Positions 32,563 to 35,500 of a stretch of DNA of 64,000 nucleotides are shown here, piece after piece. The translations under genes were made by a program, and so were the position numbers. Origin of the DNA: Azolla caroliniana (taxonomy: Eukaryota; Plantae; Polypodiophyta); contig JBHGNT010000005.1 in the NCBI GenBank assembly GCA_043228905.1, forward strand, positions 17,918,001 to 17,982,000, given 5' to 3'. Every line of letters begins with the position of its first letter. Position 1 is the first letter of the stretch. The notes beneath the pieces were generated by a model. The model did not search any database, had not been told where the DNA came from, and saw nothing but the letters and a program-made list of their open reading frames with translations.

Positions 32563-35500
32563 ATGTTCTGCAAAGCCACAGAGCTTCTGTGGCAGGAGCT
32601 TTTCAGAGACCCTTCTCAATTCTGGGATGACAGAAATACCAAGAAGGTATGCACTTCTTTAACTCCTCCTCCTCCTCCTCCTCCTCCTCCCCCTCACTCT
32701 CAATGGTTTTTTGTTTTTTGTTTGTATTTCGCAGAGAAGTGAGAATTGCCCTGATTTTATACATAAACAAACCAAGACCCCCTTATGGATCCATAACCTG
32801 CATAACCCACCTTGGGTTCGAGAAAATCTGAATCTTCTCAACCTCCGTAGCCTCTTGATACACAAAGCTGAGGAGGTTCCTTATTTCAAAACATTTAAAG
32901 ATAGGAATTCCCTCTTAGATTACATCAAATCATGTGGAAAAGAGAAGGACATTTCCAAGGTAAGAGGCTTACATGCAGCTATGCAGAGGAAAGGATTGAT
33001 CCCAAAAGATACCTATGTGACAACTTCTTTGCTTAACACATATGCTAAGTGTGGTTTACATGGCAATGCGAGAGAGCTTTTCGAAGAGCTCCCGGTGCGT
33101 AACGTAGTGTCTTGGAATGCATTGATTGGTGGATATGCCCATTGTGGACTTGGAAATGAAGCTATTGAATGTTTTCACCAAATGAAAGATGAGGGTATTT
33201 TTCCGGATAAAGTTACCTTTACCTGTATATTGAAAGCTTGTGGTAGTGTAGGGTCTCTTGAGATAGGGGAGGTGATCCATGCAGAGATAAACAAACAAGG
33301 GTTATTGCGAAAAGATCTCGTGCTGGGAAACACTTTGATAGATATGTATGCCAAATGTGGTATGCTAGGAAAAGCTCTAGAAGTGTTTAAAGAGCTTCCA
33401 GTGCATGATGTTGTATCTTGGAATGCACTTATTGGTGGGTATGCCCAACATGACCTCGGGCATGGAGCTTTGAAATGCTTCCGGGAGATGCACAATGAAG
33501 GCATCGCTCCGACTGTGGTCACTTTCACACTGGTCTTGAAAGCTTGTGCTTCTGTCGGATGTCTTGAGGTTGGAGAAGAGATATATGAAAAGGTAAGCAA
33601 GTTGGGTCTATTGGGAAAGGACTTTATGCTCGGTACAGCATTGGTTGATATGTATGCCAAGTGTGGTGAGCTAGAAAAAGCACGAAAAGCATTTGAAATG
33701 CTTCCACAGAGAGATGTTGTGTCTTGGAATGCACTAATAGCCGGATATGCCCAACGTGATCTTGCCGAGGAAGCTTTAAAATGCTTCCAGAGGATGCGAG
33801 ATGAGGGTATTTTTGCAAATCCATTAACGTTTATATCTGTTCTAAAAGCTTGTGGAAGCATAGGGGCTCTCGATATGGGGAGAGAGATACATGCCGAGGT
33901 GAAAAACCTAGGCCTATTGCAAAAAGACCTCATGCTTGGCACTGCAGTGGTCGATATGTATGCCAAGTGTGATATGATGGAAAAAGCACAAGAAGTATTT
34001 GAAGAGCTACCAGTGCATGATGTTGTGTCTTGGAATGCCCTTATGGGTGGCTATGCCCAAAATGGATTGGGCAATGAAGCTTTGAAGTGCTTCCAACAGA
34101 TGGAAGATGAGGGTATTGCTCCAAATGTAGGAACCTCTATTTCCATCTTGAAAGCTTGTGGATCTGTAGGAAACCTTGAAATGGGAGAGGAAATGTGTGC
34201 AAAGATAAGAAAGCAAGGATTAATCACAAAGGATATCATGCTTGGCACTGCGTTAGTGGATATGTATGGCAAATGTGGTGCTCTGGAGAAAGCCCAGGAA
34301 GTATTTGAAGAGCTTCCGGTGCATGACGGCGTAGCTTGGAGTGCACTTATTTCTGGGTATGCCAAGCATGGACATGATGATGAAGCTTTGAGATGTTTTA
34401 GACAGATGCAAGATGAGGGCATCTCTTCAGATACTGTAACCTTCACCTGCATTTTAAAAGTTTGTGGAAGCTTAGGGTCTCTTGAAATAGGTGAAGAGGT
34501 CCATGCGCTGGTCAAGAAGCAGGGTCTGATAGAGAAAAATATTGTGGTCGGCACTGCACTTATGGACATGTATGCCAAGTGTGGCATGTTAAATAAAGCA
34601 CAAGAAGTGTTTGAAGAGCTTCCAGTGAAGGATGTTATGTGCTGGAATTTACTATTGACTGGCTATGCCCAACATGGGCATAGTGATAATGTGATAAAAT
34701 ACTTTGAAAAAATGAAGGAAGAAGGTGATGTTCACCCTGACGCGGTGACGTTTTCATGTGTTTTAAAAGCCTGTGGAGCTACACGATCTCTTTTGATGGG
34801 GGAAACCATACATTCGGAGGTGAGAAAGAGGGGCTTGTTAGCAACAAACCTTATCCTTGGCACTGCATTGATGGACATGTATGCTAAGTGTGGTTTGCTA
34901 GAGAAGGCACATGGACTGTTCCAAGAACTTCTGGTGCGAGATTCTGTATCTTGGAATGCATTGGTGGCAGCATATGCCCAACATGGCTTTTCCGATGATG
35001 CTTTGAAATGCTACAGGAAGATGCAAAGGGAGGGCATCGCACCGGATGAAGTGACTTTCACTTGCATCTTGAATGTTTGTGGCATTGTAGGATCTCTTGA
35101 GATGGGAGAAAACATACATGTTGAGGTTGAAAAACAAGGGTTACTGAGAAAAAATATTTTACTAGGTACAGCATTGGTAGATATGTATGCCAAGTGTGGG
35201 GTGATGGGAAAAGCACAAGAAGTGTTTAATGAGCTTTCACACTGTGATGTTGTCACTTGGAATGCTTTAATGGCTGGATATGGCCAGTTAGTTCATGCTA
35301 GAAAGGTTTTAGACTTGCCAGTAAAAATGAGGGCGTATGGTATTATGCCAGATTCTGCTACTTTCCTTATCTTGCTCAATGCATGTAGTCATGCAGGTTT
35401 AATAGAGGAGGGGCAGATCATTTTTGATGATATGCATAGCATCTATGATCTTGCTCCAACATTAGAACATTATGCGTGTATGGTTGATCTTTTCGGGCGT

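Follow-up and report, generated by a model that had tools for sequence, protein, structure and literature searches.

The question raised by this locus is where a pentatricopeptide repeat (PPR) gene of the fern Azolla caroliniana begins, and what is encoded by the additional sequence at its 5' end. The gene lies within a window of 64,000 nt (assembly GCA_043228905.1, contig JBHGNT010000005.1, positions 17,918,001 to 17,982,000 of the forward strand), and all coordinates given below are those of the window. A preliminary description, made from the letters alone, had placed the start at an ATG at 32563, opening a 28-codon exon joined in frame by an 88-nt phase-0 intron to the PPR frame, and had recognized in the joined product an OSB-type PDF motif fused to a PLS-class PPR protein with an E-type end. 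It had named evidence for the splice junction, profile comparison with the PDF motifs of OSB proteins, a survey of ferns for PDF+PPR proteins and structure prediction of the domain as ways to check this. This is a nuclear fern gene with two exons, and it is transcribed. The ATG exon, the intron and the continuous PPR frame are confirmed; the upstream exon and the beginning of the second exon together encode one complete PDF domain, placed in front of the PPR array.

According to the window sequence and the listing of its open reading frames (ORFs), the two-exon gene runs on the + strand, as do all its features described here, from the start ATG at 32563-32565 to the stop TGA at 35756-35758. 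The coding part of exon 1 (32563-32646) consists of Met and 27 further codons, and an in-frame TAA (32557-32559) stands two codons 5' of the ATG. The intron (32647-32734) has GT at 32647-32648, a (CCT)n run, a T-rich or pyrimidine-rich tract and then AG at 32733-32734. The spliced product has 1,035 residues. The 1015-aa ORF of the listing opens inside the intron span, at a TTG at 32711, in the same frame as exon 2. The preliminary description had noted the TTG start of the ORF track, and its coordinates of ATG, exon and intron are exact. Annotations in which translation begins with the first in-frame codon of exon 2 lack the PDF domain.

Assembled contigs from four public runs (four studies, labelled as four organisms) were aligned to positions 31200-36900. 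The splice evidence consists of these assembled contigs, without raw reads, and the label 'RNA' of the runs is a guess. Exactly the 88 bases of the intron are missing from two contigs that carry different organism labels and share about 95% identity with the window: contig X2 record 16 (725 nt) joins 32557-32644 directly to 32733-33361, and contig X3 record 23 (817 nt) joins 32478-32644 directly to 32733-33362. Because the last two bases of the exon and the last two bases of the intron are both AG, the junction can be read as 32646/32735, which gives the GT-AG borders. In the closest run, the alignment of contig X13 record 8 (about 98.7% alike) breaks exactly at 32733, with 42 more letters unplaced. 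The contigs were also used to delimit the untranslated regions. The 5' leader covers at least 32478-32562, contig X3 record 23 being collinear with the window over 32478-32644, and the 3' untranslated region (UTR) covers approximately 35759-36598 (contig X1 record 7 to 36459 and contig X2 record 22 over 36443-36598). Contig depth was zero in all four runs between 31200 and about 32345, bar slight depth in one X3 bin (31391-31581), and also beyond about 36740, though the gene is flanked by repeats. Coverage is thus limited to about 32350-36600, as transcripts would give, and the small size of the runs also agrees with transcriptome assemblies.

The identity of the motif was studied from the two exons separately, so that each match was computed exon by exon and not on the joined protein. 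With the first 60 residues of exon 2 as the query, phmmer found 36 proteins among 1.84 billion representative proteins (cut-off E ≤ 1e-3; best E 2.7e-11), and all of them align to query residues of about 2-38. The number of matches per protein varied from 2 to 12, as expected for tandem PDF motifs. The Pfam SSB domain (PF00436) was present in 16 of the 36 proteins, and the clusters of P0002 (Lupinus) and P0003 (quinoa) carry the NCBI name 'protein OSB3, chloroplastic/mitochondrial-like'. Two profiles of the PDF motif were then run against the 3,828 stop-to-stop pieces of the six frames of the window. The first included 132 instances from the matched database proteins, with the single PPR-bearing protein excluded, and the second, strict profile 17 instances from OSB-named or SSB-bearing proteins only. 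The exon 2 piece matched with E-values of 5e-9 (all instances) and 5e-8 (strict), over profile positions 25/26-59/60 and with the exon's first codon (32735) as the start of the alignment. The exon 1 piece matched with E-values of 1e-6 and 5e-6, respectively, over profile positions 4-26 and with the alignment ending at the last codon (32646). The next best piece of the window reached 1.8 and 4. The profiles thus matched only the two exon pieces in the window, and the edges of the alignments coincide with the splice sites. As exon 1 was not used in fetching the database proteins, its match is independent evidence for one complete motif extending over the two exons.

The consensus of the database proteins, LW..LF..P..WWDNR..K.N...PDFKHK.TGE.LW......P.WV...L..L, agrees with the pattern given in the preliminary description, and the attribution to OSB proteins stands, being supported by both the phmmer and the profile matches. 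All the near-invariant columns (W11, W21, D23, R25, K28, P34, D35, F36, L45, W46, P53 and W55) are present in the Azolla protein, which has one additional residue in the variable spacer. Residues 7-28, encoded by exon 1, correspond to the N-terminal half of the motif, and the beginning of exon 2 (32735-32842) encodes the C-terminal half (PDF-I-H-K ... LW ... PPWV ... LNLL). Judged from these alignments, residues 7 to approximately 63 form one complete PDF domain, the module of about 55 residues that follows the OB-fold in OSB proteins. The Pfam scan of either exon did not give any SSB match, only six residues separate the motif from the start of the frame, which follows the in-frame stop, and no transcript coverage was present upstream of about 32350. 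Since it is without an SSB/OB-fold, the protein falls outside the OSB family.

Other routes to the motif gave less. Pfam does not include a model for the PDF motif. When the N-terminal 95 residues of exon 2 were compared with a word-indexed protein set (candidates of 554-1762 and 138-437 aa), no match was obtained; the index requires exact shared 5-mers, and these negatives therefore carry little weight. PDB sequence search and ESM Atlas look-ups produced nothing usable.

Proteins with PDF motifs were also observed outside the land plants, in the volvocine green alga Astrephomene gubernaculifera (P0011). P0023, from a set labelled Cladocopium sp. (a dinoflagellate symbiont), is another PDF-motif protein, which could represent contamination or transfer. 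Long tandem arrays were present in P0006 (908 aa, 11 PDF motifs) and in P0010 of Kingdonia uniflora (1160 aa, 13 PDF motifs). The OSB proteins of Arabidopsis are described with one to three PDF motifs, far fewer than in P0006 and P0010.

The rest of exon 2 is assigned by its repeats and its C-terminus. Pfam found PPR_2 (E 1.6e-134) and PPR (E 5.8e-128) with 17 PPR stretches, and parsing of the motifs divided the array (32903-35554) into an L-S pair followed by eight P-L-S triplets of 35, 36 and 31 residues, the last triplet being of the P2-L2-S2 type. The P motifs are exactly 102 residues apart (P 35 + L 36 + S 31) in six spacings, and the triplets are mirrored in the DNA by seven copies of a repeat with 306-nt spacing. 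The array begins about 25 residues after the PDF motif. The E-type C-terminal motifs and the stop TGA occupy 35555-35758, with the Pfam E_motif (E 5.2e-8) at residues 957-1006, covering profile positions 3-49 of 63. There is no PG box and no DYW domain, and the stop codon falls where a DYW-type protein would continue; DYW was absent among the 25 of 28 Pfam families listed for exon 2. Exon 2 thus encodes, as the preliminary description also had it, a PLS-class PPR protein of the E subgroup, here without the DYW deaminase. A decayed DYW domain within the 3' UTR was considered and rejected, as the three stop-free pieces were without a Pfam match and the homologous proteins end at the same point.

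The same combination of domains was found in other ferns. One of the 36 phmmer matches, P0012 (1,371 aa, from a Logan contig of 4,755 nt), carries three PDF motifs at its N-terminus, with a PLS PPR array and then an E motif behind them, and a search with its PDF region retrieved more PPR proteins, P0043-P0048. These include P0043 from Pteridium aquilinum (EukProt, EP00250_P014300), P0044 from Adiantum capillus-veneris (KAI5076972.1, in UniRef 'Pentatricopeptide repeat-containing protein') and P0046 and P0048 from Adiantum nelumboides (MCO5576100.1 and MCO5598193.1); P0012, P0045 and P0047 are encoded by transcript contigs. Judged by domain content, the PDF+PPR architecture recurs in ferns, in Pteridium and two Adiantum species. 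The PDF motifs of the homologues matched the OSB-only profile with E-values of about 1e-22 per motif and start 16-45 residues from the Met. An in-frame stop was present just 5' of the ATG in all five homologue loci that could be read, and therefore the short leaders of the homologues are real. In all the PDF+PPR homologues the C-terminus is formed by the E-type motifs, and a DYW domain is absent throughout. Among themselves they form three groups with mutual identities of 37-40%. The intron of the Azolla gene was also considered as a feature shared with other fern or OSB genes, but this was rejected: in Adiantum, each of the two PDF+PPR genes is a single ORF without interruption, and an OSB gene of Linum has both its PDF motifs in one exon.

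The fern survey adds one correction to the preliminary description: the chimera is not a one-off, since the architecture has been deposited, uncharacterised, from A. capillus-veneris, A. nelumboides and P. aquilinum. The statement in that description that no characterised protein of this architecture is known agrees with the literature and database entries, in which none was found; a full-text search likewise found no paper in which PPR proteins are connected with either the PDF motif or OSB proteins. What is new is a PPR protein with an undescribed accessory domain, which the public entries name only as hypothetical or as a generic PPR.

The fold of the domain was modelled from a natural uninterrupted homologue (P0044, residues 14-82), using an alignment of 65 rows of motif instances. 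The model (pLDDT 90.8) opens with one helix and closes with another; between them are three short strands, which carry the WWDNR and PDF.HK segments. No similar solved structure was found, Foldseek giving nothing at E ≤ 0.001 and the best VIA-align Z being 4.3. The model shows the PDF motif as a predicted compact, independently folding unit and gives no further hint of function.

Selection on the gene was examined with a sample of the 30 best-supported coding differences between the window and the contigs of the relatives, and not with every difference. Altogether 14 of the 30 were synonymous and 16 non-synonymous, with 665 synonymous and 2,440 non-synonymous sites, i.e. a neutral expectation of 1:3.7. 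The synonymous excess was significant (binomial P 0.0018; omega about 0.3), and the only listed difference in exon 1 (32601) was synonymous. As measured by these substitutions, the gene is under purifying selection.

The leader preceding the ATG has a different character. Positions 32423-32526 are a mosaic of short repeats of the kind (ATG)n and (GGT)n, in which ten or more ATGs occur 5' of the main start, all of them out of frame with it. The leader of the relatives reaches at least 32478, and carries several out-of-frame ATGs at 32480-32526. An upstream frame starting from 32480-32489 overlaps the main ATG, and when read through the splice, the longest upstream frame ends near 32831. In the contigs of the relatives there is an indel of 1 base at 32495, and there are indels of 2 bases each at 32505 and 32514; because of these the stretch is regarded as non-coding. 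The leader ATGs may serve translational control, or may be mere microsatellite noise.

Several observations weigh against the explanation preferred here, which is set out below. The out-of-frame ATGs would lower translation if the transcript begins 5' of them in this species. Both intron-skipping contigs are assemblies and not raw reads of the individual, and with an identity of about 95% they stem from close relatives or near-identical paralogues. The motif itself departs from the consensus with FW for WW, DDR for DNR and PDFI for PDFK, although these positions are conserved and not invariant. Only six residues precede the PDF domain here, compared with the longer, also stop-bounded leaders of the fern homologues, and because the leaders are so short and bounded upstream by stops, a canonical organelle transit peptide is not evident. 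Finally, the PPR array of the window is only 30-33% identical to those of the other PDF+PPR proteins, and for this reason a common descent of the fusion is not shown. Pairwise scores of the PDF motifs did not separate PPR-borne from OSB-borne instances either, the best PPR-borne instance being 8th of 170, and the comparisons are compatible with one origin of the fusion as well as with several.

PPR arrays bind RNA with their N-terminal repeats toward the 5' side. An organellar location is the rule, with few exceptions, for PLS-class PPR proteins, and OSB proteins share it. The PDF domain is, with moderate confidence, interpreted as an auxiliary single-strand binding module on an RNA-binding PPR protein. 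The PPR array would bind an organellar RNA in a sequence-specific manner, and as the N-terminal repeats face the 5' side of the RNA, the PDF domain would be located where the footprint borders on its 5' side. In this position it might add a sequence-independent grip on single-stranded nucleic acid, be it RNA or the DNA strand displaced during transcription in a nucleoid, and this grip could raise the affinity or recruit the protein co-transcriptionally; or it might tie the protein to ssDNA or to OSB-coated nucleoids. E-type PPR proteins that lack DYW depend, when acting in editing, on a deaminase provided in trans, and if the protein serves editing, catalysis would be supplied by such a partner. 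The preliminary description had already suggested a tether to single-stranded DNA of the nucleoid or to transcription bubbles, or a PPR repurposed for ssDNA, and these are putative ideas. A wider and clearly more speculative extension is that the PDF+PPR proteins represent an undescribed class of organellar gene-expression factors in ferns, possibly in spore-bearing land plants more widely, in which the PDF domain couples an RNA reader to ssDNA or OSB-coated nucleoids, so that editing, stabilisation or processing would be recruited during transcription.

The function of the domain could also be a different one. It is possible, if doubtful, that the PDF domain is here a module for protein contact or localisation which does not bind nucleic acid, but docks to OSB-coated nucleoids, mediates oligomerisation or replaces a presequence. 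Nothing but a very short leader ever precedes the domain, which would suit such a role, and so would the tetramer reported for OSB2 (PMC6963530); moreover, no known nucleic-acid-binding fold matches the model, the best Z-score given above included. However, the sole experimental statement available on the motif concerns ssDNA binding, for which the PDF motif of AtOSB1 alone is reported to suffice (review PMC6963530, citing Zaegel et al. 2006). A single-strand binding surface would also be expected to have residues such as the conserved Trp, Phe, Arg and Lys. An action outside the organelles, in the nucleus or cytosol, with the PDF domain contacting nuclear single-stranded DNA or RNA, is distinctly unlikely. 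The six residues before the first helix leave no room for a canonical transit peptide, and short stop-bounded leaders occur throughout the PDF+PPR family, but the organellar location of nearly all PLS-class PPR proteins and of OSB proteins speaks for the opposite, and the homologue leaders, in which Ala, Ser, Thr and hydrophobic residues abound, could act as short presequences.

The remaining two alternatives concern the gene rather than the domain. That this copy is a weakly translated or decaying PDF+PPR paralogue without a function of its own is improbable. The many upstream ATGs would be in accordance with it, as would the leader being shorter than in the homologues and the greater divergence of the motif (about 60 bits over the two exon halves vs. 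about 69 per motif in the homologues). Decay is nevertheless difficult to combine with a reading frame intact over 1,035 codons, two canonical splice sites, transcript-like contigs in four runs and the synonymous excess of the coding differences. As to a chance resemblance or an annotation artefact, with the upstream exon belonging to nothing or to another gene, only the shortness of each half-motif speaks for it, and its probability is negligible: both halves are independently significant with alignment edges on the splice sites, the contigs join the two exons, and the same order of domains is present in one uninterrupted reading frame of Adiantum.

In plant organelles, sequence-specific reading of RNA is mainly the task of PPR proteins, and their known accessory domains (DYW, SMR and NYN) have each defined a mechanism. 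The PDF motif has so far been known only as the ssDNA-binding element of proteins maintaining organelle genomes, and it is now found at the 5' end of a PPR array in several fern lineages. The combination might connect RNA processing with organellar DNA or nucleoids, or the PDF motif might be a general single-strand binder which also handles RNA; either of these, if true, would change the understanding of the motif.

The gene sits in retrotransposon-rich DNA. Directly 5' of it, at 29200-31830, is an array of tandem units of about 319 nt, each with a tRNA-Lys(UUU)-like sequence; ARAGORN made six tRNA calls within the array, one of them with the anticodon TTA, and the array resembles either a satellite or a SINE-like element of tRNA origin that has been amplified in tandem. 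An intact ORF of 1,467 aa on the - strand (12438-16841) encodes a Ty3/gypsy polyprotein with capsid, protease, reverse transcriptase (RT), RNase H, integrase and chromodomain, and looks like a young chromovirus-type LTR retrotransposon. A LINE-like element (endonuclease and RT) and two copia-type elements (gag, integrase and RVT_2), in several ORFs, were observed at 1903-5562, 8612-11725 and 50103-54298. Two further ORFs on the + strand, of 288 aa (42291-43157) and 165 aa (39408-39905), are located in a G-skewed stretch and were without a Pfam match.

In comparison with known systems, the protein shares with the OSB proteins the same PDF motif, which was significant by both phmmer and the OSB-only profile. 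It differs from them by the missing SSB/OB-fold and by the placement of the motif, which the OSB proteins have in one to several C-terminal copies and this protein in a single copy at the extreme N-terminus, followed by the PPR array. Further differences are that no long transit peptide is evident, and that the motif is split by an intron, unlike the two motifs of the Linum OSB gene. PLS-E PPR proteins are organellar RNA-editing specificity factors and related RNA-binding proteins, and the likeness to this subgroup extends from the 35/36/31 P-L-S triplets and the P2-L2-S2 end to the E-type motifs and the absence of DYW. Normally, however, only a targeting peptide precedes the repeats in this subgroup, whereas here a PDF domain, predicted to be folded, stands in that place.

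The closest counterparts in domain order are the fern PDF+PPR proteins, which likewise combine a PLS PPR array with an E-type end without DYW. The differences are in the details: the Adiantum genes are intronless, the Pteridium type has three PDF motifs, and the L motifs of the fern proteins carry long insertions absent from the protein of the window. PPR arrays are joined to other accessory domains in PPR-DYW and PPR-SMR proteins and in PRORP, which is PPR-NYN, and as in these, the Azolla protein unites a PPR array with a second functional module. In the former the modules are C-terminal and catalytic, whereas the PDF domain is N-terminal, small and, as far as known, only binding.

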